From the NCBI GenBank assembly GCA_038496445.1, contig JALMLS010000466.1, positions 496,001 to 560,000 on the forward strand: a stretch of 64,000 nt of DNA. The letters run 5' to 3'. The first letter of the stretch is position 1; every line of letters begins with the position of its first letter. Made by a program: the position numbers and the translations under genes. Source of the stretch: Trichosphaerium sp. ATCC 40318 (Eukaryota; Protista; Tubulinea). Below the pieces are notes generated by a model. It saw only the letters and a list, made by a program, of their open reading frames with translations. It had not been told where the DNA came from and did not search any database. This document shows positions 45,284 through 49,800 of the stretch, piece by piece.

Positions 45284-45555
45284 TTTGTGCAGAGTTGTTA
45301 AAGCCAAACGTCAATGAAAAATATTGACAAATCAAATCTAAGCGTAATTGTTTTTTCAACTTGGCGTTGTTGTGTATTCACTTACATGGGCATTTATGTT
45401 TGCACAGGTTAAACATCCAGCAAGAAGAAGCATTGCGACGCCGTGTTCACTGAACCTCAGAGCTATGTAAAATTAAAATGCTTTCTGACACATTGGACTT
45501 TGTGTTGTCGCCGATCTTGCTATTGTAGTTTTTATGGGTGTAGTCCAAAGTAAAT

Positions 45556-45642
45556 AACATTGTTTATTTGTGGTTCAAGATGACCTGGTAGGCTGATGGA
45601 GCCTATTTACAGAGCATCCTTCATAGTAAATAAATAAATGTT
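45556..45642 (-). promoter_or_regulatory. Type II SECIS element in the 3' UTR of the PRXL2/SelU-like gene
   Basis: AUGAA-GGAUGCUCUG-UAAA-UAGGCU(CCAUC)AGCCUA-CCAGGUCAUCU-UGAA, with outer helix AACAUUUAUUU / AAAUAAACAAUGUU. Confidence 0.9.
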
Positions 45643-45652
45643 AAATACAACT

Positions 45653-46704
45653 TTAGTTTTGCAGTGCTTTGTGCACTTCTTCCATATTAGCATGGTCACC
45701 AGATCCTTTATTTGCGTGGGAGTACAGGACCTGGTTAAACATGTTAAAGAATATCAACAAGCTTTAAAATACCTTATTTCCTGGTCCTAATACAAAGATA
45801 CCTCCTTGTTGCAGTGTGTCACCTTGTACTGTTCCAGGAGCGATTCCATCTACGAACACGTTTCGCATCATACCAGCATAATTAGCTGTAGGTCCAACTG
45901 TAGACCATAAACTTCTTGGTAGCGAAAACGCCTGCAATAGTTTTTTTTATGAATATTATAAATGTTATCACGTGACTTGACTTACCTTGTACAACTTTAA
46001 ACTAGGGTCAACGTATAGCTCAAATACATTATTATCAAGCTTAGCTTCTGAAAGAAAATTTTTCGCCATTGGGACGGTCCCGTTTCCTTTTCTCCGTAAA
46101 CACCACAACAATCCAAAACAATAAACTCACCAATAACTACTATTTGTGCCAACGCTTTCTTGAAACTATCTTGATGCGTAATAAGGGATTCTAAGGATGT
46201 TTGAATAATGTGATAATTATATTATTGTTAGCGCACGAATTTGAGCTTTAGTGCAAACCTAACTACTTGTGAGATAATTTTAGAAGGGTACTAACGTACT
46301 CAACCGAAATGCCGAACAAAGGTGAGTATAACACGTCTTTGTTGCCACAAGCTCTCGGGATCCACTTCTTTATCCTGGATATCGCGTATGCGCAAACTAG
46401 AAACTTTTGGAAAACCCTCTTGGGCTGTACACCTATTTCGGCGTTGTGTAGTCGTATGCGTTCTCCTGAGCGTAGGTTTACGCGCCAAAGCGGCGAACCT
46501 AACGCTGTTCAGCATCTGTGTCAACTTTTTGATTGCTTAACGTCAACAATAAGGACTTATCCTTCTTTCCACAAGCAAGCGCAGTACTCACAAAATGCGT
46601 TCGTTTCTCTGGTTTCAAAAAAAGAACATAATTTACAAGTTTGGAAATTGTAGGCGTGTTGTTTCTCAAACCCTGTTTTACACACTCGCTTGTTTTACGT
46701 CCAT
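45653..46704 (-). CDS. Selenoprotein of the AhpC/TSA-like PRXL2 (SelU/AAED1) family; in-frame UGA at 46300-46302; start uncertain (46704 or 46515)
   Basis: LWQQRRVILTFVRHFG-TGA|VCTKAQIQSL...IVVIGNG...LYVDPSLKLYKAF...GDTLQQGGIFVLGPGNKVLYSH...GDH, plus downstream SECIS. Confidence 0.88.
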
Positions 46705-46849
46705 AATGGCTGCACAGTTGCTGCAGGATCACAACTTGACCACTTTTGACTCGTGCTATCCCTAAAGCTACACAGCGTGTACACTAACGCCAGTATACGG
46801 CGTGCTTTATTCAATAATGCCATCCGTTAAAGAGTGAACAACAAATACA

Positions 46850-49800
46850 ATGGCAGCAATCAAAAGTGCGTGTAATCATTTTATAGTTGTATGCTAACGC
46901 ATACAGAAGGAAATGCGTCCCCTAGTACAAAACTTAGACAAGCAAGTGATTCATTTGCATGCATTATGTTTATTTACGTTAGGCTATACTCAAAGTAACA
47001 TTTGCAGGCGATAGCTATAAGAATTTTTCTATTTCGTCCACAGCTACAGTACGTTCAAACAATACGCGCAAAATATGCTAAAACGTACAGTGTGGCAGTT
47101 TTAAACCCGTAATAGCCGAAAGAAACCATATAACAGGTACTAGCGGTGCTTCCGCCATATCTCACTTCCTTCAGGCGATGTGGTAAAGGAATATGCACTC
47201 TACGCAATTGCGAAAGTGGCTGCCGTTTCTAAGCCATCACGTATCACAACAGTCGTAAAAGCTGCTGGAAGTACATTATCCAAGTCTAGCAGTGCTCCCA
47301 AAGTAACCCGGTTTGGTACAACATCAATTACAACATGAATTCGCCACAATCGGTCCTAACACGTTCTAAAGTGACAGAAATACCAGATGATATTTTATTG
47401 TGGGACCTTCATAAATTATGGGGTCTTAGCAGCGGAACTGACAAATTATTTTACTATGGAAAACGTTCAGGACCGTTTCCACCAAAATGTACGCTCACAT
47501 GACGCATTTTGATAAAAAATACTAAAAGAAAATGTTCTTTAGCAAAGTTAACAACTATGGATTCTCAATGGAAGAAGCTCAGGGTACGTAGCTACCGTTA
47601 AAAAAATACAAGTTGTATCTTAATTTTTTTTTTAAGGCGATCAAAAAAGATAGAGAAGGTCGTGTTGCTGGCATGGTTGAGAGTGCAACTTCATTTAGAT
47701 CTATAAGAACAGTAAAAAAAAAAGCAAAGTCTCTCCCAGACACACTGTTCTTTGATACTCTAGCGTACGTGACATTCAGTTCAAAATGTTTGCATTTTTT
47801 CGATTTTGCATTCACAGAATAAGTGTCAACGTTTTTTATTTACTCAATTTTTTTCTGTAGTTATTTAATGGCTTGTGGTCTACATACGCCTCAATTATTT
47901 GAAAAACCAACGGATACAAGTCTAGTATCCAAAGTACGTGTAACGTATTTAAGAGGGGAAAGATATGAAATGAACGATGTTCCACTCACTGTTGCCTCTG
48001 GTATGGTATTTTAAAGTATTGTTACTTATTAACACAATAAAATTAGCATTACTTGTAGATTATTTTACCAAACGAAGAAACCCTATCATCTCTGAAGAGG
48101 CGTTTAAACGTACAAACTGAAATTGTTGAACTTTTAAGCAGTAGCTCATTTGGGTTTTTGTAGAACATGGTGATAACCTTGCAACTATTATAATGAACCT
48201 ACCAATTTCATCACGGAAAATTCTAGCAGGGACATGTAAATTTTTAGGTCTGTTGGACGTTTGCAAGGACTCAAACCAAATGGTAAAAAAAAAAGAATTG
48301 CTTTTTTTGTCCTTCTTTTTTTTCTTTCACATATTTTTTTACAATTTATTTATCTACACTACCATTATTGTTTTTTCGTGGAAGGACTAACTGATCAAAA
48401 TCATTAGAGTCCTGACAAACTTGTTGATGCTTGGTCAAAGTTATTGCACATAAAACCAAAAGTTCTTAAGACTTTGATAAACAGACAAAGTAATATATTT
48501 CCAGAAAGCAAGACTGTGTTACCTTCTAAGGAGGTAAACTTCAACAATCGCACAATTTGTAATCATATAATATCTCTAATTACAACAAATAGGAACTTAT
48601 TAAAAAACTAATGGAAAATTCAGCTGAGGCTATTGAAGATGATGAAAAGGCTCAAGATGTTCTTAAAAATCTTCCTTCGAAATTCTTTGATGGTAAAGTG
48701 GATGCAATAGATTTAGACACCCTCGTTGCCAAGACACCAAAGGCAGCTCTTCCATCACTACCACCTCCACCAGGTTTGAAACTTTAGTGTTGTGACAATG
48801 TACTTACATTCGCTTGGCAGGTTTTGGCGATGGTGACTTTCCTTGGGATTCAGATAGTGATGATCTACTACCTGCCATACCGCCCCCAGTTCCCGCCTTG
48901 CCTGGAATACCTGGATTACCTAGATTGCCACCTGACAGTGAGGAAAAGTTTCCTTGGGATGACGATGATGATGTAAAACTTCCGTAAGCTCTTTGTTCTC
49001 TTACCTTTACTAATTTACGAAAAAGAGAAAAGTCTCGCCATGACACATCAGCTCCAGAATATGAGCCCCCACCGCCTGTATTTAAACTACCTGAACCAAA
49101 TGCCATAGAGATAAATCCAGTCAGAGTAGACCAAAAGCCTATGGTACCTGTAGCAACTCCTGGTGATGTTAAATTTAGTACGTGTTAGAAGTTTATTCCA
49201 CCATTGAATGCTGACAAAAATAAGGTGTTGATAAGGCTAATAAACGTAAAACAGTTCTAGGTACTGTGATATTAGCCTTTGTAGTTATCTTATATCAATA
49301 TACTAACATAAGTATTTTAGTTGACACTGCATTCTTGCAGGAAATGTCGCAGGTAAAAGAAAGCTCTTAAAACGCATTTACTAATAATTATGTAGCTATC
49401 TGCGGATCTTGACGATGGTTTCAATAGCTTAGTCATAGATGAACCGAGGGTTGAACCCAAAAAGTCTCGTATTAAATCAATGTTCACAGTATGTCTAAAG
49501 CTATTTTGTTCTCAAAAAGTGTTCACTTGCCACACTCGATCTAAATTCTGTTTTAGCTAGAATTAGAGTTATTCGAAGATTTTGAAGATGAGTCACGCGG
49601 TAGTGGGCGCAGTACAAGAGCAAGAGCTCCTACAGATTCCCTCACTGTGCTTGAAAATGATTTGGATGCATCTATGGGATACAATGAAATAAAGACTAAA
49701 CAAAACAACACTGAACCTGACGATGAAAGCTATGAAAACGATGCATTGACAGCCCTAGAGAATGACTTGGAACTTACTGTATCTCACCAAACAGTCCAAA

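Follow-up and report, generated by a model that had tools for sequence, protein, structure and literature searches.

A predicted PRXL2/SelU-like selenoprotein gene in Trichosphaerium and an apparently undescribed protist subfamily with the variant active site U-x-C-T

In the genome of Trichosphaerium sp. ATCC 40318 (Tubulinea), an open reading frame on the minus strand ends in TGA at the position where the PRXL2/SelU motif has its first Cys, and the question raised by this locus is whether the codon terminates translation or is read as selenocysteine (Sec). The window referred to throughout is the whole stretch of DNA analysed, 64,000 nt of contig JALMLS010000466.1 (assembly GCA_038496445.1, forward-strand positions 496,001 to 560,000), and all coordinates count from its first letter; its GC fraction is about 0.37-0.38 (37.69% is given in PMC10521059). 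A preliminary description, made from the sequence alone, had proposed a hidden selenoprotein. The follow-up analysis gives high confidence that this is a real selenoprotein gene of the PRXL2/SelU (AhpC-TSA_2) family with UGA codon 72 encoding Sec. UGA is very probably read as Sec, a reading that rests on spliced RNA retaining the TGA, on a conserved TGA column among homologs, and on homolog SECIS elements at the same place. The recoding mechanism itself is ordinary and already known.

The gene comprises six exons and five short GT-AG introns (41, 46, 44, 54 and 42 nt), with a CDS of 636 nt corresponding to 211 codons plus TAA (Table 1). The coding part of exon 1 (46515-46300, minus strand) runs through R-H-F-G to the TGA, which is followed immediately by a GTACGT donor. 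Splicing data were taken from public spliced contigs, probably RNA, of three well-covered studies, at a depth of only 6-8. All five exon joints are seen in these contigs, including a 594-nt contig that covers every exon; both joints flanking the 22-nt exon are present in all three studies, and no alternative letter is recorded at the TGA. Exon 1 is covered by a continuous contig (46519-46298), and a template-switch adapter near 46519 in one run marks the cDNA 5' end, so the start is placed at ATG 46515. The locus is an expressed nuclear gene in which splicing places UGA in frame as codon 72. These data bear out the earlier claims that the TGA is retained across the RNA junction, that the first intron and the tiny exon after it are real, and that the remaining exons complete an intact protein. 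The region 45556-46302 given in the preliminary description likewise stands, whereas the start lies further upstream and the presequence had been missed.

Table 1. Features of the predicted selenoprotein gene in window coordinates
Feature	Position	Strand	Remarks
Exon 1	46300..46519	-	short 5' UTR, ATG 46515, codons 1-72; last codon is the predicted Sec TGA
Putative mitochondrial presequence, about residues 1-29	46429..46515	-	composition; predicted targeting
In-frame TGA, predicted Sec72, final codon of exon 1	46300..46302	-	retained in spliced contigs of three studies
Intron 1, phase 0, adjoins TGA	46259..46299	-	41 nt, GT..AG; joint in contigs X1, X2, X6
Exon 2, 22 nt	46237..46258	-	V-C-T-K-A-Q-I; V73-C74-T75 of the U-V-C-T motif
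Exon 3	46131..46190	-	spliced contigs
Exon 4	45986..46086	-	spliced contigs; weak PF13911 match, E 0.063
Exon 5	45773..45931	-	spliced contigs; G-D-x-x-Q-Q-G-G family motif; PF13911 E 0.00096
Exon 6	45653..45730	-	spliced contigs; G-D-H motif; TAA stop 45655-45653
Type II SECIS hairpin	45555..45643	-	helix I, kink-turn core, helix II, AAA, apical ministem
AATAAA, candidate poly(A) signal	45563..45568	-	3' arm of helix I, just past SECIS core; putative function

That the TGA is instead a true stop, leaving a pseudogene or a product cut short at 71 residues beside a chance or relic hairpin, appears very improbable. Such a reading draws on the absence of the SECIS from the RNA contigs and on the fact that Sec insertion is itself inferred, but five intact downstream exons are spliced, the TGA is conserved together with SECIS elements among nine distant loci, and the hairpin lies far above chance level. 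Strain differences are mainly silent (five of six changed codons in exon 1, the sixth falling within the presequence), and a pseudogene was rejected on these grounds together with the intact exons.

Even less probable, and largely refuted, is an ordinary protein produced because UGA means Trp or Cys genome-wide or because alternative splicing drops the codon. Although one database gene caller gave Trp for the TGA of a homolog (P0004), long coding stretches in the window contain TGG and lack TGA, which terminates 6 of the 18 long ORFs; UGA is thus not a general sense codon in the Trichosphaerium genome, and a Trp reading was rejected. Two weak alternative donors could remove the TGA in frame, but they would cut out conserved active-site residues, and the donor at 46299 is used in all three studies. 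TGA-skipping was therefore rejected as well. No tRNA gene was found in the window. Sec machinery has been reported in Acanthamoeba (PMC8038987); the Trichosphaerium genome paper nowhere mentions selenium.

Past the stop codon lies the canonical type II SECIS that had been proposed, with an AUGAA...UGAA core at 45624-45574 on the minus strand (starting 28 nt past the stop), a 10-bp helix II with one mismatch, the AAA and a 6-bp apical ministem. The strict SECIS pattern occurs once in the whole window, both strands searched, and shuffled sequence yields 0.017 such patterns per 128 kb at equal quality; the hairpin folds with a z-score of -3.5 relative to shuffles, and 0 of 60 shuffles had AUGA plus helix I. 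Rfam SECIS_1 gives a full-length match at 21.7 bits, below its gathering score of 35. A covariance model was also built from the SECIS elements of six homologs; it gave no match but, derived from a poor alignment and containing no base pairs, was uninformative. If Sec insertion follows the usual route of eukaryotes, the 3' UTR element would recruit SBP2, eEFSec and Sec-tRNA, allowing UGA to be read as Sec.

The preliminary description had named the lack of any transcript joining CDS and SECIS as evidence against its reading. The contigs do not span this link: three RNA contigs end at 45651, 45648 and 45643, 2-10 nt past the stop, leaving the SECIS uncovered, and contigs of depth 6-8 are unable to reveal true RNA ends. 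These endpoints could mean that most transcripts of the same selenoprotein gene stop at a proximal poly(A) site without the SECIS while a minority isoform is full-length, so that the choice of site would act as an on/off switch. The contig ends of three independent studies agree within 9 nt, as such a site would predict, and two of the contigs end in unaligned letters, 2 in one and 5 in the other. The proposal nevertheless seems improbable, given what contig ends can show. The hairpin begins exactly where one contig ends (45643), suggesting a break due to RNA structure or to assembly, the sole AATAAA within 350 nt past the stop lies beyond the SECIS core, and the intronless homolog contigs (L001, L002, L159 and L160) hold CDS and SECIS jointly.

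The reading of UGA as Sec in a PRXL2/SelU-like protein gains further support from homologs. The search started from exon 5, with matches that were mostly fragments beginning after a stop; nearly all homologs were retrieved as such post-UGA fragments, and it appears that the subfamily is hidden in databases because gene callers split its members at UGA. Nine further eukaryote-type loci have TGA in the column of the window TGA, eight of them reading U-x-C-T/S and one U-P-T-C, and other homologs have Cys there, in agreement with the earlier placement of the codon at the first Cys of the motif. Individual motifs read U-L-C-T in L001, L003, L004 and L164, U-V-C-T in L002 and L159, U-V-C-S in L160, U-S-C-T in L162 and U-P-T-C in L163. 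In the genomic loci L004 and L162, the TGA is immediately followed by a phase-0 intron, as in the window gene. SECIS elements lie 15-34 nt past the stop in six homolog loci, and in L002 poly(A) follows directly; the helix II sequences of the six differ, with 9-10 of 10 pairs kept. Because these hairpins were chosen by pairing pattern, it is their fixed position that serves as evidence. L003, L163 and L164 showed only non-standard or unclear hairpins; the candidate in L003 (L003:817-873) has an AUGA/UGA core and a long stem, and lacks the apical AA. The L162 contig is eukaryotic, gene-dense and of 25% GC, its family member combining a SECIS and a post-TGA intron with the lack of an N-terminal extension.

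For comparison with these homologs the window protein was taken exon by exon, the tree and the structural analysis resting on the homologs themselves. In a tree built on the sequence downstream of the redox residue, the 12 eukaryote-type rows group as a single clade (100/97) adjoining a bacterial U-M-F-A group; as no animal SelU or SelL sequence is among its rows, no claim on origin is made. Exons 4, 5 and 6 of the window gene score 55, 30 and 26 bits against the eukaryotic clade profile (other profiles reach at most 42, 20 and 17), the scores of exon 3 being uninformative, and exon 1 shares 47% identity with P0004 over 32 amino acids. The named clade members are amoebozoan, namely a Filamoeba post-UGA fragment and a protein of Arcella intermedia (P0085, EukProt). 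The latter reads D-A-C-T, where Sec is replaced by Asp and not by Cys, and is extended at its C-terminus by about 85 residues. The bacterial loci examined read U-x-x-C, C-x-x-C or U-x-x-A, with Cys at +2 in none. A metagenome scan returned bacterial relatives only, and a search at the DNA level for R-H-F-G-(U/C)-x-C-T gave at least 133 chance matches in bacterial genomes and viral contigs, none PRXL2-like among the matches listed. The bacterial U-M-F-A group (L006:4839-5378 and P0008-P0041) is large, with one Sec and without a resolving Cys; one member is labelled Desulfobacterales, and its database entries are split at UGA. The window gene thus appears to belong to an undescribed protist subfamily with the variant active site U-x-C-T. 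This motif was not found among catalogued selenoprotein motifs, and a literature search, with partial coverage of journals, found nothing on the motif or the subfamily.

The register of the active site could be fixed on P0004, which shares U-V-C-T-K with the window gene. P0004 aligns without gaps to human PRXL2B, Sec falling on Cys44 and Thr on Cys47. Its predicted model (pLDDT 93) has PRXL2B as best match (TM 0.78), followed by BCP/PrxQ peroxiredoxins, and places the Sec column where the helix following the first core strand begins. P0004 passes PF13911 at 58.5 bits; single exons of the window gene, being fragments, remain below the cut-off. The register in which Thr stands at +3 is thus upheld; the motif, which may, as suggested earlier, go with altered redox chemistry, is the norm across a protist subfamily and not confined to this gene. 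In the proposed mechanism, Sec72 would lie at the N-terminal end of the active-site helix and act as the attacking nucleophile, its most likely task being, as for other PRXL2 proteins, the reduction of hydroperoxides or of related oxidised substrates. Thr75 would occupy the place of the usual resolving Cys.

Oxidised Sec could then either be closed by Cys74 as a selenenylsulfide or be reduced by glutathione or thioredoxin. Cys74 is the sole Cys beyond the presequence, i.e. in the predicted mature protein, and all Sec-containing clade members with readable motifs contain a single Cys, placed at +2 except in L163, where it stands at +3; this pattern suggests that resolution has passed to the +2 Cys. 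Resolution by Cys74 as an i,i+2 selenenylsulfide may well apply and is the preferred, though still tentative, reading. The +2 Cys need not be the resolving partner, however, because Arcella keeps C-T next to Asp and the neighbouring bacterial U-M-F-A proteins have no nearby Cys; direct reduction of the oxidised Sec by glutathione or thioredoxin, by analogy with the UxxT glutathione peroxidases, is accordingly nearly as likely. The glutathione peroxidase motif is UxxT (PMC13188914), with Thr at +3 from Sec as in the window gene; the family is otherwise different, and neither the window exons nor the homolog gave a GPx match in Pfam.

The N-terminus distinguishes the window gene from its bacterial relatives. 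Its first 30 residues contain 8 Arg/Lys, 7 Ser/Thr and no Asp/Glu, and similar basic, acid-poor extensions occur in L002, L003, L160, L163, L164 and the Arcella protein (P0085), L162 lacking one, while complete bacterial starts are mostly short and acidic. The hydrophobic moment fails to separate the window presequence from bacterial N-termini. Judged by composition, the basic segment of about 29 residues probably directs mitochondrial import, which would deliver a mature thioredoxin-fold domain. The composite picture of a mostly amoebozoan, mitochondrion-targeted PRXL2 subfamily, in which the resolving Cys moved from +3 to +2 and catalysis proceeds via an i,i+2 Sec-x-Cys selenenylsulfide, is rather doubtful as a whole. 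If the protein is mitochondrial, it would add one more entry to a short list of mitochondrial selenoproteins, which in mammals holds TXNRD2, GPX4 and SELENOO.

Fish, invertebrates and algae are known to have SelU1-3 forms with Sec at the first Cys column (PMC3473315, PMC13134290, PMC7539508). SELENOU/PRXL2A-C resemble the window gene in the AhpC-TSA_2 domain, in R-[HR]-F-G before the redox residue and in G-D-x-x-Q-x-G-G, and human PRXL2B, the prostamide/prostaglandin F synthase (PDB 9US9/9USA), has the same fold as P0004. SELENOU proper, however, has (U/C)-x-x-C where the window gene has U-V-C-T, identity between the homolog and PRXL2B is only about 20-24%, and the window gene adds its basic N-terminal extension. 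The closest sequences found are bacterial Prx-like/SelL-related proteins (NF040769; cd02970), with up to about 45% identity and Sec in the same column. Among bacterial Prx-like selenoproteins, UxxC, UxxU and UxxS forms have been catalogued (PMC13188914), and the group beside the eukaryotic clade likewise dispenses with a resolving Cys. Bacterial relatives nevertheless differ in having no basic extension, introns or 3' UTR SECIS, as well as no +2 Cys in any locus read. Against NF040769 (cut-off 120), P0004 scores 99.2 bits, below the cut-off, and the window exons score 14 bits each when taken separately. SELENOL shares the Prx-like fold class, and SelL-related is the nearest NCBIfam model; SELENOL has two Sec residues (UxxU) forming a diselenide (PMC13134290), whereas the window gene has a single TGA and no UxxU, and this assignment was rejected. 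A typical peroxiredoxin (T-x-x-C) was likewise rejected, as R-H-F-G precedes Sec and no Thr stands three residues before it.

With these findings the eukaryotic selenoproteome gains a conserved subfamily of protists. Together with its relatives it provides natural variants of a single active site, comprising U-x-C-T, U-x-C-S, U-P-T-C, D-A-C-T, bacterial U-M-F-A and U-x-x-C, through which the role of the second thiol in Sec enzymes can be probed.

Two neighbouring genes were also observed. The divergent gene at 46764-47300 (+) is expressed and spliced, starts about 245 bp from the 5' end of the selenoprotein gene and shares a bidirectional promoter region with it; its second intron, at about 46942-46982, is GC-AG, and the one exon tested had no Pfam match. 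On the other side, a gene at 45303-44718 (-) begins about 250 nt past the SECIS; it is expressed, has a Pro/Met-rich start and gives a weak DUF4350 / ABC_transp_aux hint only.
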